From the sequence record PP942979.1: DNA of 64,000 bases; one strand, given 5' to 3'. Below are positions 22,088 through 54,821 of the stretch, one piece after another; within the stretch, counting starts at the first letter, position 1; each line of letters begins with the position of its first letter. The notes below the pieces were generated by a model, which saw nothing but the letters and a program-made list of their open reading frames with translations, ran no database searches and had not been told where the DNA came from. A program made the position numbers and the translations under genes.

Positions 22088-22138
22088 AAATAATAGGCTG
22101 AAATAGGTCTATATACGCACATGCGCCTGTGATACACT
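22088..22138 (+). promoter_or_regulatory. Box + extended -10 promoter
   Basis: AAATAATAGGCTGAAATA ... TGA-TACACT, same spacing as the other copies. Confidence 0.65.
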
Positions 22139-22191
22139 ATATGCAGACGCTACACGTCGTAGCGCACACAACTCATGCTAAGGGGCATACA

Positions 22192-22890
22192 ATGAAAGCA
22201 GCAAACTTTGATAAAGCATTCAACGCGAAAGACGAAGCAACCTTAAACGCATACGCTGATCGTATTCAGCAAGCACTTAACGCTCTGGGCCGTTATGACC
22301 TGAAGATCAAAATCATCTTCGGTACCGACCCGTTCAGCGAGTTCCCTGATTTTGTGAATGACCCGAACGGTTTTCGTGTCGTCCAGAACAACGAAGAAGT
22401 TTTCGATATATACACGCCGACCGAGAGACATATTGAAGGCGACGCGTCACAAACTTTCGTCTACGCGGCAATCGGCGGCGTAGAAGCCTCCAAGTGGGGA
22501 AAAGAAGTTTCCGATAAAGACGTTGAAGAAATCGCCGCTGACCTGAACGAAGAAATCGAACGTGCGGGCCGTATGTTTTATGAAGAAGATCGCGCAATGC
22601 TGCAAGAAATTGCAGACAAGCTCAACTCTCAGATGCAGCGCGCCGACGCTCGCGTGATCGTTACAAACGGTGCCGAAGACAATCTCATTCTTATGGTTGT
22701 CGGTTATGCTGATGGTGAAGTCAGTGACGAGTACGGTTTCTTCTTAGACCTGCCGTACACTGATGAAGACGCCGCTGATACAAACTACGTCCTGCACTAT
22801 GCAGGTTACCCAGATATGAACGATCACACGTTCACTTCTGAATCGCTCGATGAAATCTCAAAAGAGATCGAAACACTCGACCTGCTGTAA
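22192..22890 (+). CDS. Acidic hypothetical protein with internal duplication
   Basis: AAGGGG RBS before MKAANFDK. Confidence 0.8.
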   Translation: MKAANFDKAFNAKDEATLNAYADRIQQALNALGRYDLKIKIIFGTDPFSEFPDFVNDPNGFRVVQNNEEVFDIYTPTERHIEGDASQTFVYAAIGGVEASKWGKEVSDKDVEEIAADLNEEIERAGRMFYEEDRAMLQEIADKLNSQMQRADARVIVTNGAEDNLILMVVGYADGEVSDEYGFFLDLPYTDEDAADTNYVLHYAGYPDMNDHTFTSESLDEISKEIETLDLL

Positions 22891-22951
22891 TCGCTAACAC
22901 TGACTGCGGGGTTACGGCCCCGCTTACTTACTTCTATATAGAGACACGACC

Positions 22952-23572
22952 ATGACTATGCACATCACTACTTTCTTTGTTAAACGCTCTTACGCTTCTC
23001 TGGCTGCTGGTTCATTCACTATTGCTTCGAAGCAAGTGCAAGAGCTGGTGGAATCTGAGGTCTTTATCGTGTACGCAAACACGGGGTTGGGCAACGCATT
23101 CGCTGTACGCAACATCACCCTGACGCCTGTTGATGAAGCAAACGTGCGTGTTGAGTTCGACCCGCTGACCGACGTTCACGCAATGCCGTCTAGTGTTCTG
23201 CCCAAAGAGAGTCTGACTGAAAGCACACAGCAATATCTCATGGCGCCGGATGACGTGGCCGCTGCCCCTCGCTTCTGCGTATCTAACCACGCATCAGGCA
23301 ACGAGCCTAACATGTTGTGTCTGAACCATGATGTACGTGAGCGCCTGATTCAATATAAGGGCGGCATGATCAGTCTCACTGAGCTGGTGCTGGTGCTTCA
23401 CGACCAAGATATTTCAGTGACCGACATTCATCAACACCGTCGCAACAAAGAGAAGTACGTGGCGCAGATCACAGAGCGCACCTCACACGTTATCGAACTG
23501 TCGAAAGACAACGGCGTTAAGCAGCACGATAGCGACTTCCCATTGCTTGCTCGCCTGAACGTGTATCTCTAA
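22952..23572 (+). CDS. Hypothetical protein
   Basis: 206-aa ORF. Confidence 0.75.
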   Translation: MTMHITTFFVKRSYASLAAGSFTIASKQVQELVESEVFIVYANTGLGNAFAVRNITLTPVDEANVRVEFDPLTDVHAMPSSVLPKESLTESTQQYLMAPDDVAAAPRFCVSNHASGNEPNMLCLNHDVRERLIQYKGGMISLTELVLVLHDQDISVTDIHQHRRNKEKYVAQITERTSHVIELSKDNGVKQHDSDFPLLARLNVYL

Positions 23573-23577
23573 TCAAC

Positions 23578-23628
23578 ATAGCTTTGGACAAAAGCGCCGT
23601 TGTGCTCTAACGCTCAATGGCGTACTAT
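23578..23628 (+). promoter_or_regulatory. Box + -10 promoter
   Basis: TGGACAAAAG at 23585; TTGTGC 17 nt before TACTAT at 23623. Confidence 0.65.
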
Positions 23629-23675
23629 GTAATCTCTAGCGCAATGACGCGCTCAACAATGAAAGAGGCAATATC

Positions 23676-23921
23676 ATGTCAGAGAAACAAATCACACTCG
23701 ATCTTATCGCAGACGTAGCATCGCCAACTGAAATCATCTTTGAAGATGGCGAGTCTTCTAACGACTGGCTCAAGCCGTATGACCTGCGCCTGGCTGTTAC
23801 GCAGACTGTCGGCCCGAACGGCTATCCCGAAGTTGCAATCATCGGCCAAGAAGATGATCTGCGTCGCTTCTTGGCTGAGAAGCTGCCTGACACTGACGGC
23901 GAACTCGAAGACGTGCGTTAA
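23676..23921 (+). CDS. Small acidic hypothetical protein
   Basis: GAGG RBS, 81 aa. Confidence 0.75.
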   Translation: MSEKQITLDLIADVASPTEIIFEDGESSNDWLKPYDLRLAVTQTVGPNGYPEVAIIGQEDDLRRFLAEKLPDTDGELEDVR

Positions 23922-23925
23922 TCTT

Positions 23926-23947
23926 ATGGGGCCTCGTGCCCCATTTC
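23926..23947 (+). terminator. Hairpin, probable terminator
   Basis: ATGGGGC-CTCGT-GCCCCAT then TTCT. Confidence 0.55.
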
Positions 23948-23970
23948 TACTTTCTGCCTGAGATACGACT

Positions 23971-24459
23971 ATGAAAAACCAATATCTGATTCTTCGCATG
24001 AGCCCTGCTGATTTATACGACAATCAATTTCTGATGCGCGGCTTCAATCGCAAACGTATCGAAAACGTCATTGGCGTTATCGTTGTCGTGGACCACTCCG
24101 ACAGCATGTATCACCTGTCGCGTGTTCAAGTTGACCTGTTGCAGTCTGACACACAGCAGAACTGGGCAAGACTGAGTTGGTCTAGCATAGATCGTGAGAG
24201 CATTGACTTAGGCATGCGCAGCCTGCCGCCTGAGCTGGCTATTGCCATTCGCGCTATGCGAAACAATCGCATGTATCATACCGTCGATACAAAAATCCCT
24301 GTGGCGTTTCGTGATCGTCACACTAACTTCGCCTACACGACGAGCGCCGTACGCAAGATTGCTAACAGAGAAACGAAGTCACTCGACGACTTCACTGTAG
24401 AAGAAATCGTAGCGCACCTGAAACAGCGTCTTGGCGTTGAGATTGAAATCAAACTGTAA
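23971..24459 (+). CDS. Hypothetical protein
   Basis: 162-aa ORF. Confidence 0.75.
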   Translation: MKNQYLILRMSPADLYDNQFLMRGFNRKRIENVIGVIVVVDHSDSMYHLSRVQVDLLQSDTQQNWARLSWSSIDRESIDLGMRSLPPELAIAIRAMRNNRMYHTVDTKIPVAFRDRHTNFAYTTSAVRKIANRETKSLDDFTVEEIVAHLKQRLGVEIEIKL

Positions 24460-24506
24460 ACACTTAAGGCTCACACTGTGTGGGCCGTTTCTATTTGGAG
24501 AATGCT

Positions 24507-24767
24507 ATGATTTATGAACGCGAAGAACTTGAGGCGATGCCTCTCGATGTGCTGTATAACCTCGCTGGCGCTAAAGGTCTGTTAGACGATCTGACAGACG
24601 ATGATGACGCGCCTGATCGTGAAGCGCTGACTGAAATGATTCTCGAATCGCAGTCACTCGAACAGCAGGCAGACGAAGACGCTGCCGACAAGCAATGCGC
24701 CGAAGATGATCGCGACCCGCGCATCAATCGTCGTGATGGCCAAGACGGCTCGGATGATTACTGCTAA
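24507..24767 (+). CDS. Small acidic protein with HeH/Rho_N-like module
   Basis: GGAG RBS; ELEAMPLDVLYNLAGAKGL...REALTEMIL. Confidence 0.7.
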   Translation: MIYEREELEAMPLDVLYNLAGAKGLLDDLTDDDDAPDREALTEMILESQSLEQQADEDAADKQCAEDDRDPRINRRDGQDGSDDYC

Positions 24768-24985
24768 TGTCACCTACTGAACTGAACGAATACCTACATC
24801 TGGTGCTGACGCCTGTTGCTATGGCGTGGCGTGAACAGTTTCCCAAAAAGAAACAAGTGATCGCTTCGGTGAAAACGCCGTACTCTTGTCGTATCAAGTT
24901 CGTCGAAGACCAAGAAGTTGAGAAGCAGTGGCAGGCATTCTGCCGCACTCACGGTCTCAAGAACGAAGAAACACTCGAAATCTAA
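24767..24985 (+). CDS. Hypothetical protein
   Basis: TAATG coupling, 72 aa. Confidence 0.7.
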   Translation: MSPTELNEYLHLVLTPVAMAWREQFPKKKQVIASVKTPYSCRIKFVEDQEVEKQWQAFCRTHGLKNEETLEI

Positions 24986-24988
24986 ATC

Positions 24989-25018
24989 AAAGGGCTGCCA
25001 TTGCTGGTGGCCCTTTTT
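24989..25018 (+). terminator. Intrinsic terminator
   Basis: AAAGGGCTGCCA-TTGC-TGGTGGCCCTTT then TT. Confidence 0.85.
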
Positions 25019-25023
25019 CATTT

Positions 25024-25032
25024 CTGTAAATA
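25024..25032 (+). promoter_or_regulatory. CTGTAAATA motif
   Basis: Intergenic, just after a terminator, about 32 nt before ATG 25064. Confidence 0.55.
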
Positions 25033-25063
25033 ACTCGTACAACAATCAACGCGAGTCACTACA

Positions 25064-25429
25064 ATGCGCCGCTTCATTCTCGTTCTCAATGTCACTCAGG
25101 CAGAGCTAGACGCCAGCCACTTCATGCAAATCAAACTCAACATCATAAGCACCCTGCGCCGAGCCGCCTGTGTTCTGCTTGTTGTGCGTGAGACGAAACA
25201 GGTCATGTGTGTTTCTGAACTGACCTTTCAAACTGCGTCAGGCAATCTCAAGCGTGTTGACTTCGACGCACCTCGCGATGTTACTGCGCACGTTATCAAA
25301 TACAACGAACTGATGATGGCTATGGCAAACAACGCCAGAGACCTCAGCGTTCGTCACTTTGGCCGGCAGGTCGAGCTAGATACAGCCGACACCAAACGCC
25401 TGTTCACTCAACTGGAGATTATTGCATGA
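25064..25429 (+). CDS. Hypothetical protein
   Basis: 121-aa ORF. Confidence 0.7.
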   Translation: MRRFILVLNVTQAELDASHFMQIKLNIISTLRRAACVLLVVRETKQVMCVSELTFQTASGNLKRVDFDAPRDVTAHVIKYNELMMAMANNARDLSVRHFGRQVELDTADTKRLFTQLEIIA

Positions 25430-25671
25430 GTCAGTCATTAGGCGCCTCGCTTGGCGCTCGCTTTGCTGTTAGCTCACAAGAGAATATCGAACGCCGTAAG
25501 AAGCGTGACCCGAAAAACAAAACGCTGACCTGCGCTGGCACAACGGCTCAATACAACGCAATCGGAGTGCTGGCTAACAAACTCGATGTAAGCCGTTCGC
25601 GTGTTATCGAAATGGCCATCGAAGAACTGCTGGCTAAACACAATATCAAAGTCGGCGGTGATAATGACTGA
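25426..25671 (+). CDS. Ribbon-helix-helix (CopG-like) DNA-binding protein
   Basis: TLTC....QYNAIGVLANKLDVSRSRVIEMAIEELL fits the RHH pattern. Confidence 0.65.
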   Translation: MSQSLGASLGARFAVSSQENIERRKKRDPKNKTLTCAGTTAQYNAIGVLANKLDVSRSRVIEMAIEELLAKHNIKVGGDND

Positions 25672-26026
25672 CACGCATATCTACTGCCGTCTGTATGGTG
25701 TGCAGCATCGTCTAAAGATTACCGCCTTCAACTTTATGAAGCAGCCAAACATGATCACTGTCGATTCGTCTGATGTTCTCAAGATGATGCCGCTGATTAA
25801 TGTGGGTGCAGCCTATGATACATATACGCCGTACAATGTACTCAAGGCAGGGCAGGCTGACTTCAAGATTCGCCTGATCGAAAGAACTGATGCGCATGTC
25901 TGGCGCTACGTGTTCGAAGACTATCGCGGTCAGATGTTTGAAACGTTCTTGATTCGGAGACACTATGAAACGCCTAGGGATTGTAACGGTGTTGTCATTA
26001 AAGGACAAACAACCCAAATCATGTGA
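25664..26026 (+). CDS. Hypothetical protein
   Basis: MTDTHIYC start overlapping upstream stop. Confidence 0.7.
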   Translation: MTDTHIYCRLYGVQHRLKITAFNFMKQPNMITVDSSDVLKMMPLINVGAAYDTYTPYNVLKAGQADFKIRLIERTDAHVWRYVFEDYRGQMFETFLIRRHYETPRDCNGVVIKGQTTQIM

Positions 26027-26600
26027 TCTCGATATTGTGCCTGTGTCGAAAGACGAAGAATGGGGCTCACTGAGTCCCTTTCATTTAGGGCCGTGTCGAA
26101 CGCCTGACGGTACGATGTTTCTCAACATGGAGAATCTCTGGCAGTACAGCAAAGTGTACGACGACCATGTTATCAATTCGAATGACCTGTTCCTTGGTGA
26201 GATCTCAAGTGACTGGTGGCAGTGGCATTTGAAGGGAAGTAAATCACAACAGGCGCATCGCTATCCTATGGGAAAAGGCCAGAAGGCTTTATTCTCCAAA
26301 TGGGGCGACTTGCGCCTTTCGTACATTTCGGCACGTAAACAAATCTATGTGCCTGAGTATGCGAAGCTGGTTGTGCAGCAGCCGAAGTTCAGGCGCTTGT
26401 TGAAAGAGTATAGGAAAGGTGCGCACATAGTTTTACGAGACTATGACACCTACGATATTCTTCGTGCCTACCCCGATGCGCGTAGCCCGTGGGTATCGGC
26501 AATCGAAAACAACAATGCAAAGTTCGGCCATGCGTTTGTTATCGCACTGTGCCTGTTATTCCACGAAAGACCACTTTGGTATAATCAATGGATAATATAA
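25965..26600 (+). CDS. DUF6939-like protein (possible NADAR-related fold)
   Basis: LSPF..GP...MENLWQYSKVY...YISARKQIY...Y...GHA pattern recalled from giant virus and jumbo phage proteins. Confidence 0.5.
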   Translation: MKRLGIVTVLSLKDKQPKSCDLDIVPVSKDEEWGSLSPFHLGPCRTPDGTMFLNMENLWQYSKVYDDHVINSNDLFLGEISSDWWQWHLKGSKSQQAHRYPMGKGQKALFSKWGDLRLSYISARKQIYVPEYAKLVVQQPKFRRLLKEYRKGAHIVLRDYDTYDILRAYPDARSPWVSAIENNNAKFGHAFVIALCLLFHERPLWYNQWII

Positions 26601-26905
26601 AATACGAAGCCTGCATCGATCTATTCACACGCGCCGGAAACATGAACCTCCCGATTCTGCCTAAGTGTGAACTACAGGCCTCTCTATTCGATCAGTATAC
26701 GAAAAAGCGAATACCAGTTCGCTTCAACGCCACAAACGTAATCAAGATCAATGGCGCTACCTGCGGTAGTCTGCAAATCTTCGACTGTGTTAATCTGATC
26801 ATCTGGTCATCGTTTGATGTTAATCGCTTTACGCTGTATGTCGAGCGAGTACACAAGGCAGACGTGTCAGAGAGCGCCCAGCAGTCTGTCGAACTCTGCA
26901 AATAA
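26588..26905 (+). CDS. Hypothetical protein
   Basis: 105-aa ORF; stop is embedded in the promoter box. Confidence 0.7.
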   Translation: MDNIKYEACIDLFTRAGNMNLPILPKCELQASLFDQYTKKRIPVRFNATNVIKINGATCGSLQIFDCVNLIIWSSFDVNRFTLYVERVHKADVSESAQQSVELCK

Positions 26906-26950
26906 CTGGTCAAAATAGCCGTTCTTTTCAGTACCAGTTTATGTTATACT
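26900..26950 (+). promoter_or_regulatory. Box + extended -10 promoter
   Basis: AAATAACTGGTCAAAATAGCC ... TGT-TATACT. Confidence 0.8.
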
Positions 26951-26996
26951 GAGAGCGAGCGCTATTGCTCATAAAACTCAAGCTGAGGAGCTTAAC

Positions 26997-27314
26997 ATGT
27001 CATCTTCTACTACTCTGACTTTCATCTTCCCTGAAATGACCACTCTGGAAGTTTCTATCGGCAACGGCGTTGTGCCACAATATCTGGGTCTCGCGGAAAA
27101 CCGAGACATAACATTCAGCGACATTAAGGCGTTGCGCCTGATGCAAGACTCAAACGTTATCGGAGTAATGAGTCGCTTCGACCAGTCGATGCTGAATATG
27201 CTGATCGCTCGCCACGAAACGAACGAGCATATCCGCTGCCGTGACGCCATTGAGAATGGCAGCGAGTATTTCCCATCTACTTGTCTCTACCTGAAAGTAG
27301 CGCATCACCGCTAA
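26997..27314 (+). CDS. Hypothetical protein
   Basis: GAGGAG RBS, 105 aa. Confidence 0.75.
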   Translation: MSSSTTLTFIFPEMTTLEVSIGNGVVPQYLGLAENRDITFSDIKALRLMQDSNVIGVMSRFDQSMLNMLIARHETNEHIRCRDAIENGSEYFPSTCLYLKVAHHR

Positions 27315-27377
27315 GATTTGTGAAGGGCATTTGCGAGTGCCCTTTGAAAATCAAACCCACGTTCTGAGGAGAACAAA

Positions 27378-27734: not shown

Positions 27735-27798
27735 TTGTTGCTCGCAGGTTCTTACGAGAGCCTGCTGTCAACATAACCCATAAGCTGAGGAGCTTAAC

Positions 27799-28203: not shown

Positions 28204-28209
28204 CAAACA

Positions 28210-28259: not shown

Positions 28260-28712
28260 ATGGAAATGTTTGACCGCTCAAATGTGATAAGCGCAATCAT
28301 GCGCAACCTGAAAGACGTGCGTAAGATAAAAGACCTGCGCACGTTCGACGACAAGGTTTACTTTCGGCTTAACGACAAAGACTACTTTGTTTCTGGCAAA
28401 CACCCAGAGTTGAAAGTTGTCTGTCAAGGTCAGTACGACTACGAGATGATGGCACAACTCAACTTTGTGTATCGTCGTAAGATGAAGCCCAACACTGATA
28501 CGCCGATGCGCCTTGCTCGTATCGCTATGGGTGTGACGCTTGTTCAGGTAGCCAAAGAGATCGATGTAGATGCAGGCAACCTGAGCCGTATCGAACGGGG
28601 CATTCAGATCCCGGCGATGGAGGTAGCAGAGCGCATCGCCAAGTATTTCAATAACACAATAACAGCCATTCAAATTTGTCATCCAACTTATAAGGGAAAA
28701 ACTAATGCTTAG
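28260..28712 (+). CDS. XRE/Cro-CI-type HTH protein with extra N-terminal domain
   Basis: MRLARIAMGVTLVQVAKEIDVDAGNLSRIERGIQIPAMEVAERIAKYF. Confidence 0.85.
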   Translation: MEMFDRSNVISAIMRNLKDVRKIKDLRTFDDKVYFRLNDKDYFVSGKHPELKVVCQGQYDYEMMAQLNFVYRRKMKPNTDTPMRLARIAMGVTLVQVAKEIDVDAGNLSRIERGIQIPAMEVAERIAKYFNNTITAIQICHPTYKGKTNA

Positions 28713-32229: not shown

Positions 32230-32631
32230 ATGGAAAAGACGTACATGAGTCATTGGGGATCGCGCTATGTGCGGTCGTCATCGGGACGATGGTTCTCAGT
32301 TCATGGACGTGAAGGAACAATGGTGACCAATCGGTATGGAACGACGTTCTACCGTAGCGGTTCAGAAGTGTGGCGCGACATAACCAAAGGGTGGGAGATA
32401 GCTCTGGAGCGCGAACTGCATAGTCGAACTCGAAAGGACTTTGAGGCGATTAATGAGAAGTTCCTTCACTGGGGTAAGATAATCAGAACGATGATTGAGC
32501 AAGGGATCGCAGAGAACAACCAGCATACTCAAGACTTAGCTGAGATGCTTGAGGCGCAGCGCATCAAATCTTACGGACCCAAAATCGAGCAACTACGCAT
32601 AATACTGGATGAAACAGCCATTAAAAGCTGA
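32230..32631 (+). CDS. Hypothetical protein
   Basis: 133-aa ORF. Confidence 0.7.
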   Translation: MEKTYMSHWGSRYVRSSSGRWFSVHGREGTMVTNRYGTTFYRSGSEVWRDITKGWEIALERELHSRTRKDFEAINEKFLHWGKIIRTMIEQGIAENNQHTQDLAEMLEAQRIKSYGPKIEQLRIILDETAIKS

Positions 32632-32649
32632 GTCTGATTGTGTTATAAT
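32599..32649 (+). promoter_or_regulatory. Box + extended -10 promoter overlapping the end of the upstream CDS
   Basis: ATAATACTGGATGAAACAGCC ... TGT-TATAAT at the conserved spacing. Confidence 0.65.
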
Positions 32650-32698
32650 AGAGATGAACGCTAGACATTCGTTTAGCTACTTACATGAGGATATGTAT

Positions 32699-33034
32699 AT
32701 GAAAAAGTCAAAAGTTAAAGCAGAAGTTGTTGCACCTACTATTGAAGGCCGCCCATTCACTTTGTACAACGCCTCGCCTATTCCTGAGGTATCAGAAACA
32801 CCATTCGCTGATCGTGATACATTTCTTCCTATGCTGCGTAAAGTTCAGGACGCTGCTCAACTGGAACGCATTCGTGGTTTATCCTGCTGTCCGTATTGCC
32901 GTGAGACAATGATGCTTGGTGAATACACCAAAGACAACTGGCTCTGGTCATACTGCTATCAGCACATGATTGAGCACCACAACGTAACGCCGTCCGCAGA
33001 ATTTATTGCTTACGTCGAAGCTGCTTCCAAGTAA
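32699..33034 (+). CDS. Hypothetical protein with CCPYC and H...H residues (possible metal binding)
   Basis: TGAGG RBS before MKKSKV. Confidence 0.7.
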   Translation: MKKSKVKAEVVAPTIEGRPFTLYNASPIPEVSETPFADRDTFLPMLRKVQDAAQLERIRGLSCCPYCRETMMLGEYTKDNWLWSYCYQHMIEHHNVTPSAEFIAYVEAASK

Positions 33035-35088: not shown

Positions 35089-35089
35089 C

Positions 35090-35914: not shown

Positions 35915-36178
35915 ATGGCTGTAGGCTTTGTGAAAGACGATGGCGTAAACGATACCATCGAAACAAACGTAATGAACGAGATTGACCGCGCTCGTTCTGA
36001 ACTTCAAGGCGTAGGTTCTGATTACTGCGTCAACCCTGACTGCGGTGAAAAGATTCCTGTGATGCGTAAGCTCGCTATGCCGAATGCGCGTTACTGCATT
36101 AACTGTCAGGCAAGTCACGATGGTTCTGCTCATGCTGGCTACAATCGTCGTGGCTCCAAAGACTCTCAATTGAGGTAG
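35915..36178 (+). CDS. TraR/DksA C4 zinc-finger protein, YbiI-like
   Basis: C....CGEKIP..R..AMP.ARYCINCQ; C-terminus GYNRRGSKDSQLR as in E. coli YbiI. Confidence 0.9.
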   Translation: MAVGFVKDDGVNDTIETNVMNEIDRARSELQGVGSDYCVNPDCGEKIPVMRKLAMPNARYCINCQASHDGSAHAGYNRRGSKDSQLR

Positions 36179-38908: not shown

Positions 38909-38915
38909 TAATCAT

Positions 38916-38943
38916 GGGAGGCCCTTAGCAGGGTTTCCCTTTT
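38916..38943 (+). terminator. Intrinsic terminator
   Basis: GGGAGGCCCT-TAGC-AGGGTTTCCC then TTTT. Confidence 0.8.
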
Positions 38944-38965
38944 GTCATTTCTGGAGCATTTTCGC

Positions 38966-39946
38966 ATGAGATTCGGATTCGCCTGCAAGCTGATTGACGC
39001 AAACGGCAAACAGCCCTACCCAAACAAAAGCATTAGCTACGCCCACTTCTCTAAACTTGACCTCGACGCACAACGTCAACGCCTGCGCGAGATAGTCACG
39101 GTCAACCTGACTTCACTTTACGATATGATCGCACACGTTGCGATGTTGCGTACTGACATGCGCATGTTTCGTATCACAAGCGAACTACTTCCGCTCTACA
39201 CGCACCCGCATGTATCTCACCTGTATGACGAGCACGAACTCGCCTCGTACATTGAACACTGGTTGTGGAAGTGCGGTAGTCTTGCACGTAGTTCTGGCGT
39301 TCGTCTTTCGTTTCACCCAGGTCAGTTCACGGTACTTGCATCTGATCGTCCTGATGTTGTTGTCAACTCGATACGCGAACTTGAGTACCACGCATACTGT
39401 GCCTACCACATGGGATACGGTCGTCGCTTTCAGGACTTCAAGATCAATATTCACCTCAGTGGTAGACTTGGTGCGAAAGGCTTCCGTGCTGCTCACTCAA
39501 AACTTTCTGACCACTGCCGTAAGATGCTCACCGTTGAGAATGACGAGATCACTTCGAGCGTAGAAGATTGCTTGGAGCTGGCAGACCTGTGTCCGATTGT
39601 GCTCGACATTCACCACCACTGGGTAATGACAAACGAATACATTCAACCAGACGATGATCGTGTTCAACGTGTCATTGAGTCTTGGCGCGGCATTACTCCG
39701 GTTGCGCACTACTCAGTTTCAAAGCCAGAGTTCGTGCCGTCTCGTGGTCTCCCTGATCAAAACAAGCTGACTGCTAATCGTATGCAGTTACGCGCTCACG
39801 CAGATTACTATCACAACGAAGACGTGAATGACTGGGCCCTCAGTTTCTCTGAATTTGACCTGATGTGCGAGTCAAAAGCGAAGAATAGAGCGCGAATGAA
39901 ATTGGCATGTTTTACGCTCAACTCAGCAAATAACTGGACAAAATAA
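38966..39946 (+). CDS. uvsE: UV damage endonuclease (UvsE/UvdE)
   Basis: RFGFAC, FRITSELLP..THP, RLSFHPGQFTVLAS, NIH, LTVENDE, VLDIHHH, HYS, HADY, MCESKAK. Confidence 0.92.
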   Translation: MRFGFACKLIDANGKQPYPNKSISYAHFSKLDLDAQRQRLREIVTVNLTSLYDMIAHVAMLRTDMRMFRITSELLPLYTHPHVSHLYDEHELASYIEHWLWKCGSLARSSGVRLSFHPGQFTVLASDRPDVVVNSIRELEYHAYCAYHMGYGRRFQDFKINIHLSGRLGAKGFRAAHSKLSDHCRKMLTVENDEITSSVEDCLELADLCPIVLDIHHHWVMTNEYIQPDDDRVQRVIESWRGITPVAHYSVSKPEFVPSRGLPDQNKLTANRMQLRAHADYYHNEDVNDWALSFSEFDLMCESKAKNRARMKLACFTLNSANNWTK

Positions 39947-39979
39947 GGCTTGTTTTCGAAGGTTGCCCTATGATACACT
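39928..39979 (+). promoter_or_regulatory. Box + extended -10 promoter
   Basis: AAATAACTGGACAAAATAAGG ... TGA-TACACT. Confidence 0.8.
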
Positions 39980-40035
39980 GTTTATGAGCGCTATCGCTCG
40001 TTTTTCTCATATAAGAAGACAGAGGAAATAAGACA

Positions 40036-40338
40036 ATGTTCAATACGACAACTATCGCAACGAAAGCAAGCATTGCACCGACCGTTAAACACTCTTTTGG
40101 CATCACGGGTCTTGCACCCACTAATCGTATCTCCTGTGTTTGGCCTGGCGCTCTGGAAGTTCCGCTGCACATTAAACGTTGGTGCCGTGCCAACGAAATC
40201 ATGAATGACCTTGACCCGTACATGCGTGTTCGCTTTAAAGGTCGTCGCGCGGATATTCTGAATTTGGTTGCTGTCCATCTGGCACCAAATAACTCTGAGC
40301 TTGCGGTTCGCATTCTCGCAACTATTACTGAGGCCTAA
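40036..40338 (+). CDS. Hypothetical protein
   Basis: GAGG RBS, 100 aa. Confidence 0.7.
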   Translation: MFNTTTIATKASIAPTVKHSFGITGLAPTNRISCVWPGALEVPLHIKRWCRANEIMNDLDPYMRVRFKGRRADILNLVAVHLAPNNSELAVRILATITEA

Positions 40339-43356: not shown

Positions 43357-43401
43357 CTGGTCAAAATAGCGCTTCTTCGTGAGGCGCTTTTCTGCTATAA
43401 T
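43351..43401 (+). promoter_or_regulatory. Box + extended -10 promoter, with a terminator-like hairpin in the spacer
   Basis: AAATAACTGGTCAAAATAGCG ... TGC-TATAAT; AGCGCTTC/GAGGCGCT-TTT at 43368-43391. Confidence 0.8.
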
Positions 43402-43468
43402 AGCAGCTAGAGCAACATCGCTCTCAACGTCACTTTTAACTATACGTTTATAACGGGAATTGTCATTT

Positions 43469-43771
43469 ATGTCACGCACTATTTCACGCAAGAAAGCAGT
43501 AAGCCTCATGTCCACAACTTACAACGCAAAACATCCTGAGTATCTTCCGCGCCTGTTGGCCGAAGATATGGACTCGACTCACCTGTTCGAGTTTCGTGAG
43601 ATGGTTGTTGCTAAGATTCAGGCAGGCGAAGACCCAACTAAAGTTGTCGATGATATGATCGACACGGCGATTCGCGTTACTCAGGTTCGTCGTCGCACCA
43701 GCAACGATTACAACCCGAAGATCGCCGACGTGCTTACTGATGAACTGCGTGATATGCTCCGTAAACTCTAA
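43469..43771 (+). CDS. Hypothetical protein
   Basis: MSRTISRK; start uncertain. Confidence 0.7.
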   Translation: MSRTISRKKAVSLMSTTYNAKHPEYLPRLLAEDMDSTHLFEFREMVVAKIQAGEDPTKVVDDMIDTAIRVTQVRRRTSNDYNPKIADVLTDELRDMLRKL

Positions 43772-47345: not shown

Positions 47346-47349
47346 ACCC

Positions 47350-47380
47350 AACGGGAGACCTTAACTGGTTTCCCGTTTTT
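47350..47380 (+). terminator. Intrinsic terminator
   Basis: AACGGGAGACC-TTAACT-GGTTTCCCGTT then TTT. Confidence 0.85.
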
Positions 47381-47404
47381 CATTTCTGCGCAAATTTTGA
47401 GACT

Positions 47405-48379: not shown

Positions 48380-48424
48380 TCGGCTGAAATAACCATGCTG
48401 TCTAAAGTGCGTCTATGCTACAAT
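48374..48424 (+). promoter_or_regulatory. Box + extended -10 promoter
   Basis: AAATAATCGGCTGAAATAACC ... TGC-TACAAT. Confidence 0.7.
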
Positions 48425-48456
48425 ATGCGTAGACGCACTAACAAAGAGAAAACGAT

Positions 48457-49161
48457 ATGAAGCCATTAAAACGAATCCCCCTGAGTTCCGATACAAACCT
48501 GTTTGCTATTAACGCCATAGTTCATATGACCGCATTTCTATATCTGGACGTTACTGTGCATTCCGAACATTTCGGAGACAAAGAAATAATGCTACCAGTG
48601 AGGGTCAATCACAATGTGTCGCCCCATGAACGTCTGGCTGGTGTACAGTATGTCGCTTATATACCTGTGTTGGCGTGTCATCCGATATCCGACATCGAGT
48701 TCCATACAGAGCTTGGTTACACGGAAGTGAATGTCAAACACTTATCCATGGACTATACCAAATGCAGTCATTGGGTATACATCGGCCTTCTGCCTGACGT
48801 GGCTGAGTCTGATATGCGCGACAAGCGTTATGTCGCGCCTCTGCGTGTGTATACAGTTCCACATGAAATGGGTATGCCTGATATATACAAACGGCATATT
48901 GCTCGCGGTGCAGCGATACGTCCTGCCTATCTGCGCACTTCGGCTCTGGACAATATTGACAATGAAACCTGGGAACAACTGCGGGCTCGTCCAGATCGCG
49001 GTACCTCGTGGTCGGACTTCTTAGACGCAATCACTAACGGACGTCTGACACCTAAAGACAATCTATCCGAATGTCTTGAAAGCATAGATCAGGAGTTCAT
49101 GCCTGAGAGTGTAGTTAAACGTCTGCGTCAGGCTCAGGTTCAAAGACGCATGAGAGGTTAA
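48457..49161 (+). CDS. Hypothetical protein
   Basis: 234-aa ORF after the promoter. Confidence 0.75.
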   Translation: MKPLKRIPLSSDTNLFAINAIVHMTAFLYLDVTVHSEHFGDKEIMLPVRVNHNVSPHERLAGVQYVAYIPVLACHPISDIEFHTELGYTEVNVKHLSMDYTKCSHWVYIGLLPDVAESDMRDKRYVAPLRVYTVPHEMGMPDIYKRHIARGAAIRPAYLRTSALDNIDNETWEQLRARPDRGTSWSDFLDAITNGRLTPKDNLSECLESIDQEFMPESVVKRLRQAQVQRRMRG

Positions 49162-49163
49162 TC

Positions 49164-49394: not shown

Positions 49395-49396
49395 CA

Positions 49397-49705
49397 ATGC
49401 CTACTATTACTCGTAACGACACACTGGAAAAGAAAGTACAACGCGCACTGGAAATCTGCTGGAACGAAACAGTAAAGAACAATTCAGGGCCGACGACTTA
49501 TGCTTTTCTCGCTTCTTCATTTGCTGCTGATGGTCGCAGCCTGTTCGAAAATGAATTGAAGATGATCGGCGTCATGCTGCGTGACGGTCTTAACATCAAC
49601 CTGTATGGTCGCTATGCAGCAACTACCTACACAAGCAACAAGGGAATCATGATCGCATTTCAGCCTGTTGCTGACCTCGAAGATATTGTGGAGATGACTC
49701 TATAA
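49397..49705 (+). CDS. Hypothetical protein
   Basis: 102-aa ORF. Confidence 0.7.
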   Translation: MPTITRNDTLEKKVQRALEICWNETVKNNSGPTTYAFLASSFAADGRSLFENELKMIGVMLRDGLNINLYGRYAATTYTSNKGIMIAFQPVADLEDIVEMTL

Positions 49706-50253
49706 TGGAACAGATTGATTTGTTTGCTTGGCCTGATTGTGGGCGCACGATGTATGAGGCACACACGCTGCTGGAGCCAGCAGTTCGAACGCCTGATTTT
49801 GCAGTACGCCAGATGCGTTATACTCATGCGGCCTTCGGCAATAGCGGGGCAATTGGCGGGGCACTCTTTCCGCAGAAGCTGAACAAGAAGATTGTCAGCC
49901 TGCACGAATTTATCATCGGCCCAAGCCCTGCGTTTCAGCGTGAGATAACTGCTGGCTCTGGTGATGTAGCAAACATGATGGACCCGCAGTATCTGTACAA
50001 CCTGTATCTGCATACAGAGACCGTTGCAATTCGTGTGTCTGAGTTCCATAACTTCACTGAACGGGGTCCGTTGTCTGCGCTGCACCTATTCACTGTGGCG
50101 ACTATTTATGAGATGCGCCTGATCGTTTACTTTGCAGATGACGGCATCGAAACTGATCGTGACCGTGAAGATTGGTTGCAGAGCATTCGTGGTTACTTCT
50201 CGAACCGCAGCAAGTTCCGTATCAAAGCAGAAAAAACTTTATTCACTAAATAA
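49705..50253 (+). CDS. Hypothetical protein
   Basis: TAATG coupling, 182 aa. Confidence 0.75.
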   Translation: MEQIDLFAWPDCGRTMYEAHTLLEPAVRTPDFAVRQMRYTHAAFGNSGAIGGALFPQKLNKKIVSLHEFIIGPSPAFQREITAGSGDVANMMDPQYLYNLYLHTETVAIRVSEFHNFTERGPLSALHLFTVATIYEMRLIVYFADDGIETDRDREDWLQSIRGYFSNRSKFRIKAEKTLFTK

Positions 50254-50289
50254 CCGCAGCGCTTACGGGCGTCGCACAGGAGAAACATT

Positions 50290-51546
50290 ATGTCATTCGA
50301 TATGCGCCAGAACGTACTCATGGTTCGCTCTTTGATTAACGGCCAACCGTTCTATTATTTCTACAACGCAGAAGGCCTGGAGTTCAGCCTGTCTGGTTAC
50401 CAGCTTAAAGAGATTTATGATCGTCACTTTGATGGTCGTATGTCTGCTGTCACTACTTACTGGGGCTTCACAAACAAGCCGAACTATGAGTCTTTCGAGT
50501 TTGCGGATAACGGTGACTTGTTGTGGCATGTTTCTCTGAATGCTGTGTGTCACACGTATCTGCCTCTTGAGATGGTTATCGGTCATGAAGGCTTCAACGT
50601 GATTAACGGATTCATGATCGAAGATCACAAACGCATGGTGATGAAGATTCATCAAAAGGCAGTGGGTCGTAGCGTTGAAAAACTTACATGGTTCCATGAT
50701 ATGTCCGAAGAGCGTATGCGTGAAATGCTGAATGCTCTTGGTCACGGTCCGCTGCGTATTGAACGTGCTGATCGTGAAGAACTGATTAAGATTCATCGGG
50801 ACTGGCAGCGTAAGCACGACGAAGAATTTAAATACACGCACAACGCCTGTGGTATTGATCCGGAAGACAAACTCCCTGCTGACCTGTACGACGATCACGG
50901 CAAGTGGTTGCGCCAGCGGCACATGGCAAAAGGCAAAACGCTTGAGATGATGGCCAGCGAACTTGCGAACATCGTCCGCATCTTTGACCTGTACATCGGC
51001 GATGATGACTTTGACCACATGAATCCGGATTGGGACGAAGGTCTGCGTCGTGTTGCTCAAGCATTCATCTACGGGCCTAACGCCAAAGAGCGTTTCGATG
51101 AAGTGAAGTATAATCCTCAATTCGTTGTCAATGGTATCTATGCGTTGGCGAAAGACTTGAACTGGATTCATGTTAACGAAGAATCTCAGGACTATAAAGA
51201 GTCGTTGATTCGTCGCCTGATGCAAGAACTGAAAAACGAAGTAGAACGGCCGGACGGGGTGTTCGTTCTTGAAGACGGTGTAGTAATGTTGAAAGCTGCC
51301 TTGGCAGTAGCGAACGCAGAAGAGGAAGAAGAAGAAGAGGACGATGATTCTTCCGCTCGCGCAGAAGTGCGTACCTACCTCGAAGGTCTCAGTGAAGAAA
51401 AGCTGCGTACAGTAGCAATTGATCACAAGCTGGCCAAGAAAATGAAGATTGCCAAGATGGCCAAGAGCGAGCTGGTGGACTTGTGTGCTGACTATTTCGG
51501 CTCAGACTTTCCTGAGGACGAAGAAGAGGAAGAAGAACACGAATAG
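50290..51546 (+). CDS. Hypothetical protein with C-terminal HeH/Rho_N-like module between acidic runs
   Basis: AGGAG RBS; YLEGLSEEKLRTVAIDHKL...KMAKSELVDL. Confidence 0.8.
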   Translation: MSFDMRQNVLMVRSLINGQPFYYFYNAEGLEFSLSGYQLKEIYDRHFDGRMSAVTTYWGFTNKPNYESFEFADNGDLLWHVSLNAVCHTYLPLEMVIGHEGFNVINGFMIEDHKRMVMKIHQKAVGRSVEKLTWFHDMSEERMREMLNALGHGPLRIERADREELIKIHRDWQRKHDEEFKYTHNACGIDPEDKLPADLYDDHGKWLRQRHMAKGKTLEMMASELANIVRIFDLYIGDDDFDHMNPDWDEGLRRVAQAFIYGPNAKERFDEVKYNPQFVVNGIYALAKDLNWIHVNEESQDYKESLIRRLMQELKNEVERPDGVFVLEDGVVMLKAALAVANAEEEEEEEDDDSSARAEVRTYLEGLSEEKLRTVAIDHKLAKKMKIAKMAKSELVDLCADYFGSDFPEDEEEEEEHE

Positions 51547-51615
51547 CCTGAAAGAACTAATTAAACACGCAACACTTTAATCTTCCAATCATACCTAACA
51601 TTGTAGGGAACAAAA

Positions 51616-52038
51616 ATGAAATTCGAACAAAACATTCTGGTAGTAAATCGCATCGCTCTTATCATGAACGACGAACTGGTGCAGAAGTGGGGTGATGCAG
51701 CAAACGCTGATCGTAATGCTACAGCGTATGCAACTGCAATCATTCTCGCCAAACTTCAACAGCGCGTGTCCGTCGCTCTGCATACCGAGAATCCTGAGGC
51801 GTGTGCTCGTCCTGAATTGCTCTGGACAGACTACGGTTCTATTTCGGTAAGCGGCCTGTTTATCATCGCCTCTACTTCGGATAAAGAGGTGCTCAATCAC
51901 TACGAAGACCATGACTATCTTAATCATCTGCACACAATCAAACGTGTAGCGGAAGAGAACGGATTTAAGTTAACGGTCGTTCCTGTGAAAGCGAACTTCC
52001 CGTTCTCTAATACTGAAATCCCTGCCAGTATGAAGTGA
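51616..52038 (+). CDS. Hypothetical protein
   Basis: 140-aa ORF. Confidence 0.75.
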   Translation: MKFEQNILVVNRIALIMNDELVQKWGDAANADRNATAYATAIILAKLQQRVSVALHTENPEACARPELLWTDYGSISVSGLFIIASTSDKEVLNHYEDHDYLNHLHTIKRVAEENGFKLTVVPVKANFPFSNTEIPASMK

Positions 52039-52046
52039 GGTGATCT

Positions 52047-52346
52047 ATGAAGCGTGAACACATTCCGATGATCGATGCCGCTATCGTTTTAACGATGGAA
52101 GAAAGTCGTAGCTTTATGGGTCAACGCCCTGATGGCTTTGTCTATCTGCCGAGCAAGGAAGCACTGGAGAAGTTCGAAGCGCATATTCAGAAGCACCGAA
52201 GCTATGACAGCTACAGCACTATCCTGCACCGCGAGCTTCACGCTATCAGCGCTGAGGGCGTCGATGCGCTTACTGCTGATATTGAGCGCGATTCAAGCAA
52301 GCCCTGGATGTGGTCAGACGTAGACTACCGTATCAAGCTGTGGTAA
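52047..52346 (+). CDS. Hypothetical protein
   Basis: GAGGTG RBS, 99 aa. Confidence 0.75.
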   Translation: MKREHIPMIDAAIVLTMEESRSFMGQRPDGFVYLPSKEALEKFEAHIQKHRSYDSYSTILHRELHAISAEGVDALTADIERDSSKPWMWSDVDYRIKLW

Positions 52347-52348
52347 GC

Positions 52349-52399
52349 AAATAACTGGTCAAAATGACGGTAGTATCTGAAACCGCATTATGATATACT
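52349..52399 (+). promoter_or_regulatory. Box + extended -10 promoter
   Basis: AAATAACTGGTCAAAATGACG ... TGA-TATACT. Confidence 0.8.
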
Positions 52400-52452
52400 A
52401 GAAGCGTAGCGACTGCTGCGCTTTTTTAACTTATGTCTGAGGAGACAACAAA

Positions 52453-52917
52453 ATGCTGCAAGAAACTCAAGCCACCCTGTCCGATATCGAACTGCAAGAC
52501 CGCATGGTAGATGCTGCCGCCCAGAAACTTATCGAACTGAAACCTGAGTGGGTTGACGTTTGCGCTGCGGCACTTCGTTTATATCTGACCGTGTGCGAAC
52601 AACTCGGCGGTGAAATTCCTGAACTGCGTTTTGTTCACAACTGCCGTCCGACTCGTTTGCAGTTCCGTCTGGCGGAAAGTGTTGAGGGTGAGGAGTTCGT
52701 TGCCAACGAACTCAACAAAGAACACCAGATGGCTATGGCCGAAGCAATTCTCGATGTTGCCGAAGCAAACGAAGATGGCCACTCGCTGATGGATTTAGCT
52801 ATCTCCTCTGGTCGTCTGTTCATGATTGGTTACGACGGGCTTGCAGGTACGCTTGATAAGATTTGCTTCCGTAGTCATAAAAAGAACTACACCATGAATC
52901 TGGTTAAAGAGGCTTAA
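52453..52917 (+). CDS. Hypothetical protein
   Basis: GAGGAG RBS, 154 aa. Confidence 0.8.
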   Translation: MLQETQATLSDIELQDRMVDAAAQKLIELKPEWVDVCAAALRLYLTVCEQLGGEIPELRFVHNCRPTRLQFRLAESVEGEEFVANELNKEHQMAMAEAILDVAEANEDGHSLMDLAISSGRLFMIGYDGLAGTLDKICFRSHKKNYTMNLVKEA

Positions 52918-52918
52918 C

Positions 52919-53575
52919 ATGAAACAGGAATACACTCTGCTTAAACGAAGCAAAGTTGATGTTAATCGTTTTGCTTTCGTGTGTGATGGCGAGGTGGTAG
53001 CCAACTTTACTGCTGGCCAGTTGTTCGTGACAATGCAAAAACTCAAACACGCCGACGCTATTAAAAACGTCGATGTGCTCTGGCGTGACGGTACGCGCAC
53101 AGTTGAAGAACTGCGTGTGGTTGAGCAACGACGATTTATTCAATTCGATATGCTCGAATATGAGCATTCGATTTGCTTGCTGATGCGAGCACAGGGGCTG
53201 CCTGTTGAGTTGTCCGTTCCTGTTGACGTGCGCAAGCTGTTTGATAAGCATGGACCGTTTATCACAGAAATTCGTGTGCCGTCAGAACTCGTTGCTGATC
53301 TGCATCCTGCTTTAGAGCGCTTCACTCCAGACGAAGACGACGATATGGATGAAGACTTTGATGAAGACGACGAAGCGGAGGATATGGATGACACTGACTT
53401 TGGCTTCCGTCCAGAAGACATTCGCCAGCAGTTAGGTGATTTTAACTATCGCTCACCGGATTGGGTTGTTACTATGACTGATGTTCAGGTGGATGAAGTA
53501 AATCATCTTGAAGTCGGCATCGACCCTGACATTGAACTTCCTCGTGCGGCTGACGCGAAGGACGAATTTTTCTAA
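52919..53575 (+). CDS. Acidic hypothetical protein
   Basis: GAGG RBS, 218 aa. Confidence 0.8.
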   Translation: MKQEYTLLKRSKVDVNRFAFVCDGEVVANFTAGQLFVTMQKLKHADAIKNVDVLWRDGTRTVEELRVVEQRRFIQFDMLEYEHSICLLMRAQGLPVELSVPVDVRKLFDKHGPFITEIRVPSELVADLHPALERFTPDEDDDMDEDFDEDDEAEDMDDTDFGFRPEDIRQQLGDFNYRSPDWVVTMTDVQVDEVNHLEVGIDPDIELPRAADAKDEFF

Positions 53576-53766
53576 TGAAAAGTACAAACGATTTGGTCAA
53601 AGAGTTACGCAGACACGGCCAGCTTACTATTGACGAGCGCGAGAAGCACTTGCTGCCAGATTTGACGTTCACGCTTGATTGCCTGTGTATCACATACAAG
53701 AAGCGGGAAGTAGAGACTACCAAGCGTGGTCGTGTCATAACAATAAAATTGACCACCGTTCATTAA
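53575..53766 (+). CDS. Hypothetical protein
   Basis: TAATG coupling, 63 aa. Confidence 0.65.
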   Translation: MKSTNDLVKELRRHGQLTIDEREKHLLPDLTFTLDCLCITYKKREVETTKRGRVITIKLTTVH

Positions 53767-53780
53767 CAATCCAGAGTTTG

Positions 53781-53891
53781 GCTCGCCCGTCCAGAAATGC
53801 TCAATTCCCCAAGTGAGGTGCTTCGCGCAGAAGCATGACGGTGCGGGTCCTTTTTGAAGCGTACTAATCGAGTGTGTTTCACAAAGAACCC
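53781..53891 (+). ncRNA. Candidate structured cis-regulatory RNA
   Basis: Intergenic; 53781-53791 can pair with 53837-53848, enclosing two hairpins; a competing long hairpin spans 53845-53891. Confidence 0.35.
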
Positions 53892-53911
53892 AAAACAAAC
53901 AGGAGGCTGTT

Positions 53912-54304
53912 ATGAAGTTTAACGATGTGAGTAAAGATGCTCAGGTCATTCTTATGGGCGCTGCACTTGCTGGCGTGATCGAAACGTTCGGACGTGACGC
54001 CGAAGATGAAGGCAAGCAGTTGATTGAAACTGCGTTGCGCCAAGTCGGTTTGACGTTCGACGAGTTCCGCGTCCTGATGACCGAAATCGCACCTGAAGTT
54101 GAAGCGGAAGTTGCGTCTGTCCAGACAGTAGTTGCTGATCCGGACGATGACTTCGAGGACGAACAACTGGACACAATGGAAGAACGTCCAGGCAATCTGA
54201 ACGATGATGGGCGCACTGATGAAAATGGCTGGCAAGATCTTGACGAAGATACTGTGTGCCAGATGTGCGGCAAAGAACACTGCGAATGCAATCGCATAGG
54301 GTGA
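53912..54304 (+). CDS. Acidic protein with C-terminal CxxC...CxC
   Basis: AGGAGG RBS; CQMCGKEHCEC. Confidence 0.75.
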   Translation: MKFNDVSKDAQVILMGAALAGVIETFGRDAEDEGKQLIETALRQVGLTFDEFRVLMTEIAPEVEAEVASVQTVVADPDDDFEDEQLDTMEERPGNLNDDGRTDENGWQDLDEDTVCQMCGKEHCECNRIG

Positions 54305-54308
54305 TCAA

Positions 54309-54521
54309 ATGAGCCGACGCCCAACGCAAGATGAAGTGAACGGCCAGATAGCTGCCTCAGAAGAACAACGCTATAGCGAGCGTGAGGCTCAATATGCTGA
54401 TTGGTCAGATGACGATTTACGCAATGCGCTGTTAGAGAACGGTCTAGTCTTTGATGACGACGACTTGGACGACTACAGCCGACAAGACTGTCTCAGACTG
54501 CTTATGGGCAGTGGCTACTAA
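54309..54521 (+). CDS. Small acidic protein with HeH/Rho_N-like module
   Basis: YADWSDDDLRNALLENGL...YSRQDCLRLL. Confidence 0.7.
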   Translation: MSRRPTQDEVNGQIAASEEQRYSEREAQYADWSDDDLRNALLENGLVFDDDDLDDYSRQDCLRLLMGSGY

Positions 54522-54523
54522 GC

Positions 54524-54574
54524 AAAAATCTGGACAAAATGACGGTTGTCTCAAAACAGCGTCCGTGTTAGAAT
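54524..54574 (+). promoter_or_regulatory. Box + extended -10 promoter (first of a tandem pair)
   Basis: AAAAATCTGGACAAAATGACG, TTGTCT 17 nt before TAGAAT, TG extension. Confidence 0.8.
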
Positions 54575-54580
54575 ATAGAT

Positions 54581-54740
54581 GTAGGGCGCATATCGTGAGG
54601 AGTGCGCTCTATATGCGAATGACGCGATTCGCAGTACGAGAGAAGTTCTTGACCGTGTGTTTTCGTTTTTCCCGGACACACGGTCCTTTTTCAAGTGCCT
54701 TCGAAGTTTGAGGGTGCTTGCGAAAGGGTAGATACTCTTT
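54581..54740 (+). ncRNA. Candidate small structured RNA (alternatively a 32-aa leader peptide, 54613-54711)
   Basis: Own promoter; five consecutive hairpins, including a perfect 10-bp stem followed by CTTTTT. Confidence 0.45.
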
Positions 54741-54769
54741 GAACACTGCCAGCTATCTGGGAAGTATGC

Positions 54770-54821
54770 AGAAAACTGGACAAAATCGTGGTTGTTATCT
54801 GACGGCCACCTGAGCTATACT
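54770..54821 (+). promoter_or_regulatory. Box + -10 promoter (second of the pair)
   Basis: AGAAAACTGGACAAAATCGTG, TTGTTA, TATACT. Confidence 0.75.

Follow-up and report, generated by a model that had tools for sequence, protein, structure and literature searches.

The 64,000-nucleotide window analysed here is part of the genome of Erwinia phage phB78 (PP942979.1, 261,824 bp, genus Alexandravirus; genome coordinate = window + 186000), and between positions 22,088 and 54,821 it carries ten copies of a repeated intergenic unit in which a conserved upstream box lies at a fixed distance from a -10 hexamer. The units have one anatomy and one spacing, they are conserved over three phage genera, and insertions and deletions among relatives cluster at them. 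We consider it fairly likely that they are the early promoters of phB78, of the type read by host sigma70, each having an unusually specific UP-like element at constant spacing plus a 5′ hairpin, and that they form cassettes resembling the PeSL units of T4-like phages. The early timing, the use of sigma70 and of the alpha C-terminal domain (alpha-CTD) of the polymerase, and the role of the hairpin are what we infer from the sequence.

An initial annotation of the window had listed ten copies of the box, and pattern searches together with the conserved spacing recovered all of them. Matches to AAATAACTGGWCAAAAT with up to two mismatches are found at 26900, 39928, 43351, 52349, 54524 and 54770 (shuffle expectation 0.01) and matches to AAATAATMGGCTGAAAT at 22088 and 48374 (shuffle expectation 0.04). 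The boxes at 23578 and 32599 are weaker, degenerate variants, and we count both as genuine members because their spacing is that of the other sites and their orthologues in the related phages Alexandra and AD1 are conserved. As had been claimed, TGG lies 38 nt before the TAnnnT hexamer at eight sites, whereas 39928 and 54770 have 39 nt; counted from the start of the box, these values become 45 and 46 nt, respectively. The hexamer is present at all ten sites, eight have the TGn extension described earlier (those without it are 23578 and 54770), and the -35 region, previously called weak, retains only a T(T/A)G remnant. The extended -10 takes the form TGn + TAnAnT, and the same hexamer/TGn pattern is found across 50 promoters from five phages. 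In most of these 50, a purine preceded by a pyrimidine lies 7 nt past the hexamer and is the predicted start. At four of the ten sites (26900, 39928, 43351 and 48374) the stop codon of the upstream gene falls inside the box after a Lys codon, in agreement with the initial annotation. The element is not a by-product of coding, since it overlaps the upstream genes in differing frames or not at all.

The full upstream element is 26 bp long, about -66 to -41, with the consensus cAACTCTGC-AAATAACTGG(A/T)CAAAAT, in which cAACTCTGC is the conserved stretch that precedes the box and starts at about -66. This extension, the hairpin, two extra copies of the unit and the clustering of indels at the units were absent from the first reading. 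The box read as a -35 (complement TTGACC) for a nearer -10 or for an antisense promoter was rejected, as no -10-like hexamer lies 16-18 bp away on either strand.

A weight-matrix scan of all six genome pieces found 12 box-plus-promoter units, all on the plus strand and all between genome positions 208,088 and 257,231. Of the two beyond the window, at genome 253149 and 257231 (L002:18149 and L002:22231), one stands before the gene for the topoisomerase II large subunit and the other before gene 319. All phB78 cassettes fall in one 50-kb block made up of small ORFans. The TGnTAnA(A/C/T)T pattern has 67 matches in the phB78 genome, 55 of them without a box, and none of these 55 resembles an intergenic promoter; classical -35/-10 matches are not enriched in the early block either (12 against 21.5 expected and 18 against 20.4 expected). 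Given that box-less TGn/-10 matches are not promoter-like and classical matches are not enriched, the box belongs to the sole recognisable sigma70-type promoter class of phB78.

We aligned on the -10 both the 12 phB78 units and 50 units from phB78, Alexandra, AD1, Yoloswag and JA11 (five phages, three genera). The box starts 44-46 nt before the -10 in all 50 promoters, although the topoisomerase subunits of the three genera are only 64-84% identical. C-58, A-57, A-55, G-49 and A-43 are invariant in 50/50, and T-35 (49/50), A-42 (48/50), A-44 (47/50) and G-48 (44/50) nearly so, with T at -48 in 6/6 JA11 sites. The invariance of C-58 and G-49 upholds the earlier claim that the element is more specific than an ordinary UP element. 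Among orthologues in the three Alexandraviruses, identity is 0.7-1.0 over -66 to -33, 0.5-0.75 in the spacer from -32 to -16, 1.0 at -12, -11 and -7, and 0.8-1.0 over -4 to +7. The core of the box is TGG(T/A)C in Alexandravirus and Yoloswagvirus and TGTCC in Salmondvirus (6/6 JA11 sites), and it tracks the phage lineage and not the host, since AD1 and JA11, which differ in this core, both infect Dickeya. In IMG/VR, Alexandravirus-like contigs of ~260 kb are the only viral contigs that have the 19-mer GCAAATAACTGGWCAAAAT in promoter context; exact matches in four contigs of other sizes are without a -10 context and look like chance. No such boxes were found in 42 kb around the topoisomerase genes of PaBG, a phage with a Pseudomonas host.

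The units match a UP/weak -35/TGn/-10 layout, where the weak -35 would be offset by the upstream element; as the -35 is poor, promoter strength would come from the TGn/-10 and the upstream element. Host sigma70 RNA polymerase would read such promoters directly on DNA entry. The alpha-CTD subsites are centred at -53 and -43, where the narrowed minor groove is read and 3 A residues give about maximal narrowing (PMC3326320), and at rrnB P1 the adenines at -41 to -43 are critical (PMC4390567). With the phB78 hexamer at -12 to -7, the A-tracts of the element are AAATAA at -57 to -52 and AAA(A) at -45 to -42, centred near -54 and -43.5, so that A/T tracts of at least 3 nt stand near -53 and -43 as in a UP element. 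Because both tracts lie near the docking places of the two alpha C-terminal domains, the element probably acts as a full UP element. All computable features fit the proposal in the initial annotation of host sigma70 early promoters with an UP-like element, whose timing, sigma70 use and box reader are predictions. The setting fits too, namely a phage with a single divergent sigma factor gene, no annotated multisubunit RNA polymerase and a second motif, CTGTAAA, before its other genes. Three places in the element repeatedly show a pyrimidine-purine step: -58/-57 (CA), -50/-49 or just ahead of it (TG in 43/50, else TA or CG) and -46/-45 (CA or TG, the equivalent step on opposite strands), which hints that the element is read by shape or flexibility.

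Several points weigh against this reading. The conservation exceeds what recognition by shape only would call for: alpha-CTD makes no base-specific contacts and reads groove shape (PMC3326320), so a plain UP element leaves C-58, G-49 (both 50/50), G-48 (44/50) and the conserved block from -66 to -59 unexplained. The two A-tracts are spaced by ~12 bp, not 10-11, and between genera the core changes from TGG(T/A)C to TGTCC, following the phage lineage rather than the host. Of the 50 predicted transcripts, 64% have a hairpin that starts no more than 3 nt from +1, as do 28% of random windows; this enrichment speaks for the reading, but it counts non-independent orthologues over a high background. 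Finally, a literature search yielded no paper on promoters of this lineage. Since the invariant G/C positions are not explained by alpha-CTD, a specific factor has to be considered, and since the core is genus-specific and not host-specific, so do a phage-specific reader and concerted evolution.

The first alternative is that a sequence-specific protein binds the 26-bp element instead of or besides alpha-CTD, either a virion-delivered or host activator or an early phage repressor. An activator that recruits polymerase would suit the weak -35, and a repressor bound at -66 to -41 would silence the early promoters. The G and C bases held invariant or nearly so amid A/T, the reach of conservation to -66, the strict 44-46 nt distance to the -10, and a core that is uniform in each genome, genus-specific and tied to phage lineage rather than host all speak for such a protein, and there is a precedent in Mu Pm, where an activator at -43.5 is combined with a partial UP element (PMC4390567). 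However, no candidate protein was found, the upstream element lacks dyad symmetry, the first transcripts would require an injected activator, and the consensus sites of IHF, Fis, CRP and sigma54 are unmatched by eye. We therefore regard a specific protein as a serious but rather unlikely explanation. The only helix-turn-helix protein in the block, of the XRE type (window 28260-28712), cannot be the general reader of the box because it has no homologue in the fetched stretches of Alexandra, Yoloswag and JA11. The phage sigma factor is conserved in Yoloswag and JA11, and a DksA/TraR-like protein in Yoloswag, JA11, Alexandra and AD1; neither is an obvious box reader. More speculatively, and we would not expect it to hold, the element could be the dock of a co-evolving, lineage-specific protein: an injected factor that hands polymerase over, or an early or middle product that shuts the promoters off, possibly the phage sigma holoenzyme on the CTGCAAATA half as a non-productive look-alike of CTGTAAATA promoters. 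If true, a lineage-specific docking protein would be a new switch mechanism in sigma-encoding jumbo phages.

A second alternative holds that the identity of the box sequence is kept mostly by descent and by recombination among cassettes (concerted evolution, which has also been proposed for PeSLs), only A/T-richness and spacing being functional. Indeed, the core is uniform inside each genus, indel and rearrangement breakpoints lie at the 5′ edge of the element, and the two forms of the box are exchanged at orthologous sites via several coordinated changes: the box of the cassette at 22088 (P22088) is AAATAATAGGCTGAAAT in phB78 and AD1 and AAATAACTGG(A/T)CAAAAT in SNUABM-type contigs, and P26900 and P48374 behave similarly. 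Yet most orthologues retain their own peculiarities over ~20% DNA divergence, such as AGAAAACTGG at P54770 in all three Alexandraviruses, from which we conclude that homogenisation is rare. Moreover, the spacer diverges freely, yet single positions are invariant over three genera whose topoisomerases are 64-84% identical. Concerted evolution as the main cause is improbable in our view.

A third alternative, in which polymerase reads these promoters with the phage sigma factor (window 8706-9743) and not host sigma70, is hardly credible. A divergent sigma factor is indeed encoded (phrog_17569, E = 5.5e-156; PMC7412058) and the left half of the element is loosely like the CTGTAAATA motif, but this likeness is marginal, with 104 of 2000 column shuffles scoring at least as high. 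TGnTATAAT, moreover, is the signature of a housekeeping sigma, and the motif in front of the sigma gene, as of the replication and structural genes, is another one, CTGTAAA. The T of CTGTAAA (searched as an exact string) is C in 50/50 boxes, TGCAAATA is not enriched outside the boxes, and the first transcripts must precede any phage sigma. Chimallivirus-type virion-polymerase promoters, a candidate for a jumbo phage of 49% GC, were dropped, phB78 being an Alexandravirus with a sigma gene and without an annotated multisubunit polymerase.

The relatives of phB78 include Alexandra, Dickeya phage AD1 and many SNUABM isolates, and Alexandravirus has been grouped with the PaBG-like jumbo phages (PMC7412058). 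The annotation of phB78 lists one sigma factor gene, SSB, a UvsX-like recombinase, topoisomerase II and the DksA/TraR-like protein, and no multisubunit RNA polymerase is among the annotations of the record.

Returning to host-read early promoters organised as cassettes, the closest parallel is with the PeSL (promoter-early stem-loop) cassettes of T4-like phages (PMC2839356, PMC4122927). Both are repeated intergenic units made of a sigma70-like early promoter and a stem-loop, and in both the upstream part is rich in A/T and frequently includes the stop codon of the gene before it (4/10 window sites in phB78). In both, the position of the stem-loop varies, the PeSL subclasses having it before, across or just past the -10 (PMC2839356), and both are concentrated in a block of small ORFans and tied to insertions, deletions and swaps among close relatives. 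The phB78 units differ in that their -35 is weak and that of PeSL near-consensus, in that their 26-bp upstream element is sequence-specific and fixed in its distance, where the corresponding part of PeSL is merely A/T-rich, and in a hairpin that mostly begins at +1. The lineage, too, is Alexandravirus and its jumbo relatives and not T4-like, so we take the units to be functional analogues of PeSL rather than relatives by descent.

In T4 early promoters, UP, -35, TGn and -10 elements occur together, along with additional consensus regions (PMC2988021). Like our reading of the phB78 units, they involve host sigma70, TGn, a -10, UP sequences for alpha-CTD and immediate capture of polymerase; however, they have a good -35 and are stimulated by the injected ADP-ribosyltransferase Alt, which has no known counterpart in phB78. 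With UP elements of the rrnB P1 type (Ross 1993; Estrem 1998, 1999; summarised in PMC4390567 and PMC3326320), phB78 shares A/T tracts near -43 and -53 at a fixed position, including an invariant A-43 and a nearly invariant A-42. In contrast to them it has a CTGG/GTGT core with the invariant G-49 in place of the T-tract between subsites, and C-58 and the block to -66 are without counterpart in the UP consensus. Mu Pm, with Mor at -43.5 (PMC4390567), is similar in having a specific, fixed-distance upstream site that cooperates with alpha-CTD at a poor -35, but Mor is a middle-phase protein on an inverted repeat and the phB78 element has neither dyad nor known binding protein. The signal is of a known kind, in a lineage for which our search turned up no previous account of it.

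These results give a first working promoter map for little-studied Erwinia and Dickeya phages of ~260 kb that are considered for biocontrol, comprising 12 early units, a further class recognised by its CTGTAAA motif and a common type of terminator. They carry the PeSL idea, that genes are shuffled at regulatory cassettes, beyond the T4-like phages. With their invariant G/C between the alpha-CTD subsites, the 50 natural variants form a set for probing base-specific reading of upstream promoter DNA, and the compact promoter-plus-hairpin units, which would be strong and insulated, may serve as expression parts in Enterobacterales.

The hairpin is GC-rich and usually begins 0-4 nt from the predicted start. 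Other stems lie between box and -10 (43368-43388) or bracket the -10 and the start (48407-48438), and at two sites, 39928 and 52349, the hairpin is followed by a T-run. Stem-loops of the ompA type stabilise mRNA from its 5′ end; the phB78 hairpins resemble them in lying a few nucleotides from the predicted 5′ end and differ in that some are terminator-like with T-runs. The 5′ hairpin would most likely protect the mRNA 5′ end from decay, and hairpins with a T-run or upstream of the start would block read-through from the preceding gene. No known RNA families or tRNAs were detected in the window.

The phB78 early block was compared with AD1 and Alexandra by BLAST. By our own count, ~6 of 11 structural differences of more than 200 bp relative to AD1 fall at cassette edges, and cassettes make up ~11% of gene junctions. 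Compared with AD1 and Alexandra, phB78 lacks 0.8-1.45 kb with one to three genes, the endpoint lying 21-28 nt 5′ of the box at 54770, and as a result it has two promoters 246 bp apart (54524 and 54770). An indel of 250-416 bp ends 9-13 nt 5′ of the box that precedes the topoisomerase gene, and an additional first gene is found directly 3′ of the cassette at P32599 in phB78 and at the P26900 orthologue in Alexandra. This comparison shows the units acting as portable linkers, at whose edges gene gains, losses and swaps between relatives concentrate. Unconnected with any cassette, a small gene annotated as an endonuclease (window 24767-24985) is present in phB78 and missing from AD1 at the corresponding junction, an indel that looks like homing-endonuclease mobility.

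The ten window cassettes, all on the plus strand, are as follows. P22088 (22079-22164) has its upstream element at 22079-22104 with the variant box AAATAATAGGCTGAAAT, TGa and the -10 TACACT at 22133-22138, a predicted start at 22145 and a 5′ hairpin at 22148-22164, ahead of the coding sequence (CDS) 22192-22890. A separate terminator lies 5′ of it at 22017-22035; its orthologue in AD1 is at L008:322, and homology with AD1 begins 3 nt 5′ of the box. The weakest member, P23578 (23569-23653), has the box ATAGCTTTGGACAAAAG, the -10 TACTAT at 23623-23628 without TGn, a predicted start at 23635, a hairpin at 23638-23653 and the downstream CDS 23676-23921. Its orthologues are at L007:520 and L008:1138, and a change of gene order relative to AD1 begins at its box.

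P26900 (26891-26970) has a consensus box that contains the AAA-TAA end of the preceding gene, then TGt and TATACT at 26945-26950, a predicted start at 26957 and a hairpin at 26957-26970, followed by CDS 26997-27314. The additional gene directly 3′ of its Alexandra orthologue is gp265. About 30 bp with the ribosome-binding region (…CTGAGGAG…ATG) flank both ends of this gene (window 26969-26999 against L007:5035-5065 and L007:5552-5582), which suggests that the common CTGAGGAG leader doubles as a recombination point. The box of P32599 (32590-32677), ATAATACTGGATGAAAC, lies within the 3′ end of CDS 32320-32631; TGt and TATAAT (32644-32649), the predicted start at 32656 and the hairpin at 32660-32677 precede CDS 32699-33034. 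This first gene is missing in AD1, where the cassette adjoins a radical-SAM gene.

At P39928 (39919-39999) the consensus box forms the final codons of an endonuclease gene (AAA-TAA end at 39946). The spacing is 46, TGa and TACACT (39974-39979) are followed by a predicted start at 39986 and a hairpin at 39986-39999 with its T-run, and the downstream CDS is 40036-40338. P43351 (43342-43424) has a consensus box with the upstream stop, TGc, TATAAT at 43396-43401, a predicted start at 43408, a hairpin at 43409-43424 and CDS 43469-43771; its hairpin between box and -10 scored as terminator-like. P48374 (48365-48438), with the variant box AAATAATCGGCTGAAAT and the upstream stop, has TGc, TACAAT at 48419-48424, a predicted start at 48431 and CDS 48457-49161. 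A 9-bp inverted repeat (48407-48415 and 48430-48438) brackets its -10 and start, and in Alexandra both arms are altered together (GTGCCT/AGGCAC) so that the stem is retained.

P52349 (52340-52430) has a consensus box, TGa and TATACT at 52394-52399; the predicted start at 52406 is in the left arm of a ~10-bp stem (about 52401-52424, -20.2 kcal/mol) followed by T6, and the downstream CDS is 52453-52917. P54524 (54515-54612) has the box AAAAATCTGGACAAAAT, the -35 TTGTCT, TGt, TAGAAT at 54569-54574, a predicted start at 54581 and a long hairpin at 54581-54612, with no annotated gene ahead of the next cassette; one to three genes that phB78 lacks follow it in AD1 and Alexandra. The phB78 segment 54581-54760 holds the 5′ hairpin, a possible open reading frame (ORF) of ~33 codons and a terminator-like hairpin (GACCGTGTGT/ACACACGGTC with a T-run). 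In AD1 (L008:34798-35000) and Alexandra (L007:34525-34725) ~250 nt of highly structured leader come between the P54524 orthologue and the genes phB78 lacks. The leader keeps the hairpin of the phB78 segment, in which Alexandra shows a compensatory G>A / C>T exchange, and includes a AAAGGGTTCGATACCCTTT hairpin that resembles a tRNA T-arm; no tRNA and no Rfam family were detected in it. P54770 (54761-54843) has the box AGAAAACTGGACAAAAT, a spacing of 46, the -35 TTGTTA and the -10 TATACT at 54816-54821 without TGn, a predicted start at 54828 and a hairpin at 54829-54843, ahead of CDS 54881-56488.

Of the second motif, (a)aTCTGTAAAta, the genome contains 62 copies where our own estimate predicts ~32, and 60/62 are in the sense orientation of the local genes. 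It precedes other genes on both strands, among them those for the sigma factor, SSB, replication and structural proteins, with many copies 30-60 nt 5′ of start codons; examples in the window are at 8665-8671, 9746-9752, 25024-25030, 63036-63042 and 63876-63907, and copies occur genome-wide in L001-L006. It is probably a middle or late promoter class, perhaps read by the phage sigma factor. The sigma annotation of the divergent phB78 protein is based on its match to PHROG 17569 (E = 5.5e-156) and on reported HHpred results for the homologue in PaBG (PMC7412058); sequence searches of Pfam and PDB with it gave no match.

Ordinary terminators have a common tail, TTTTCATTTCTG. The intrinsic terminators of the window, at 8292-8342, 19927-19975, 22011-22050, 24986-25030, 38909-38965 and 47346-47400, combine a G-rich stem with the conserved tail TTTT(C/G)(A/T)CATTTCTG, which suggests a family-specific terminator or processing signal. 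The DksA/TraR-type zinc-finger protein is encoded within the early block at window 35915-36178, has 64-93% identity in Alexandra, AD1, Yoloswag and JA11, and may redirect transcription via the secondary channel of host polymerase. Three unannotated gaps of ~400 bp (window 3145-3558, 4036-4460 and 16829-17224) contain the ORFs 3141-3551, 3779-4531 and 16905-17165/17009-17491, which are probably genes missed by the deposited annotation.

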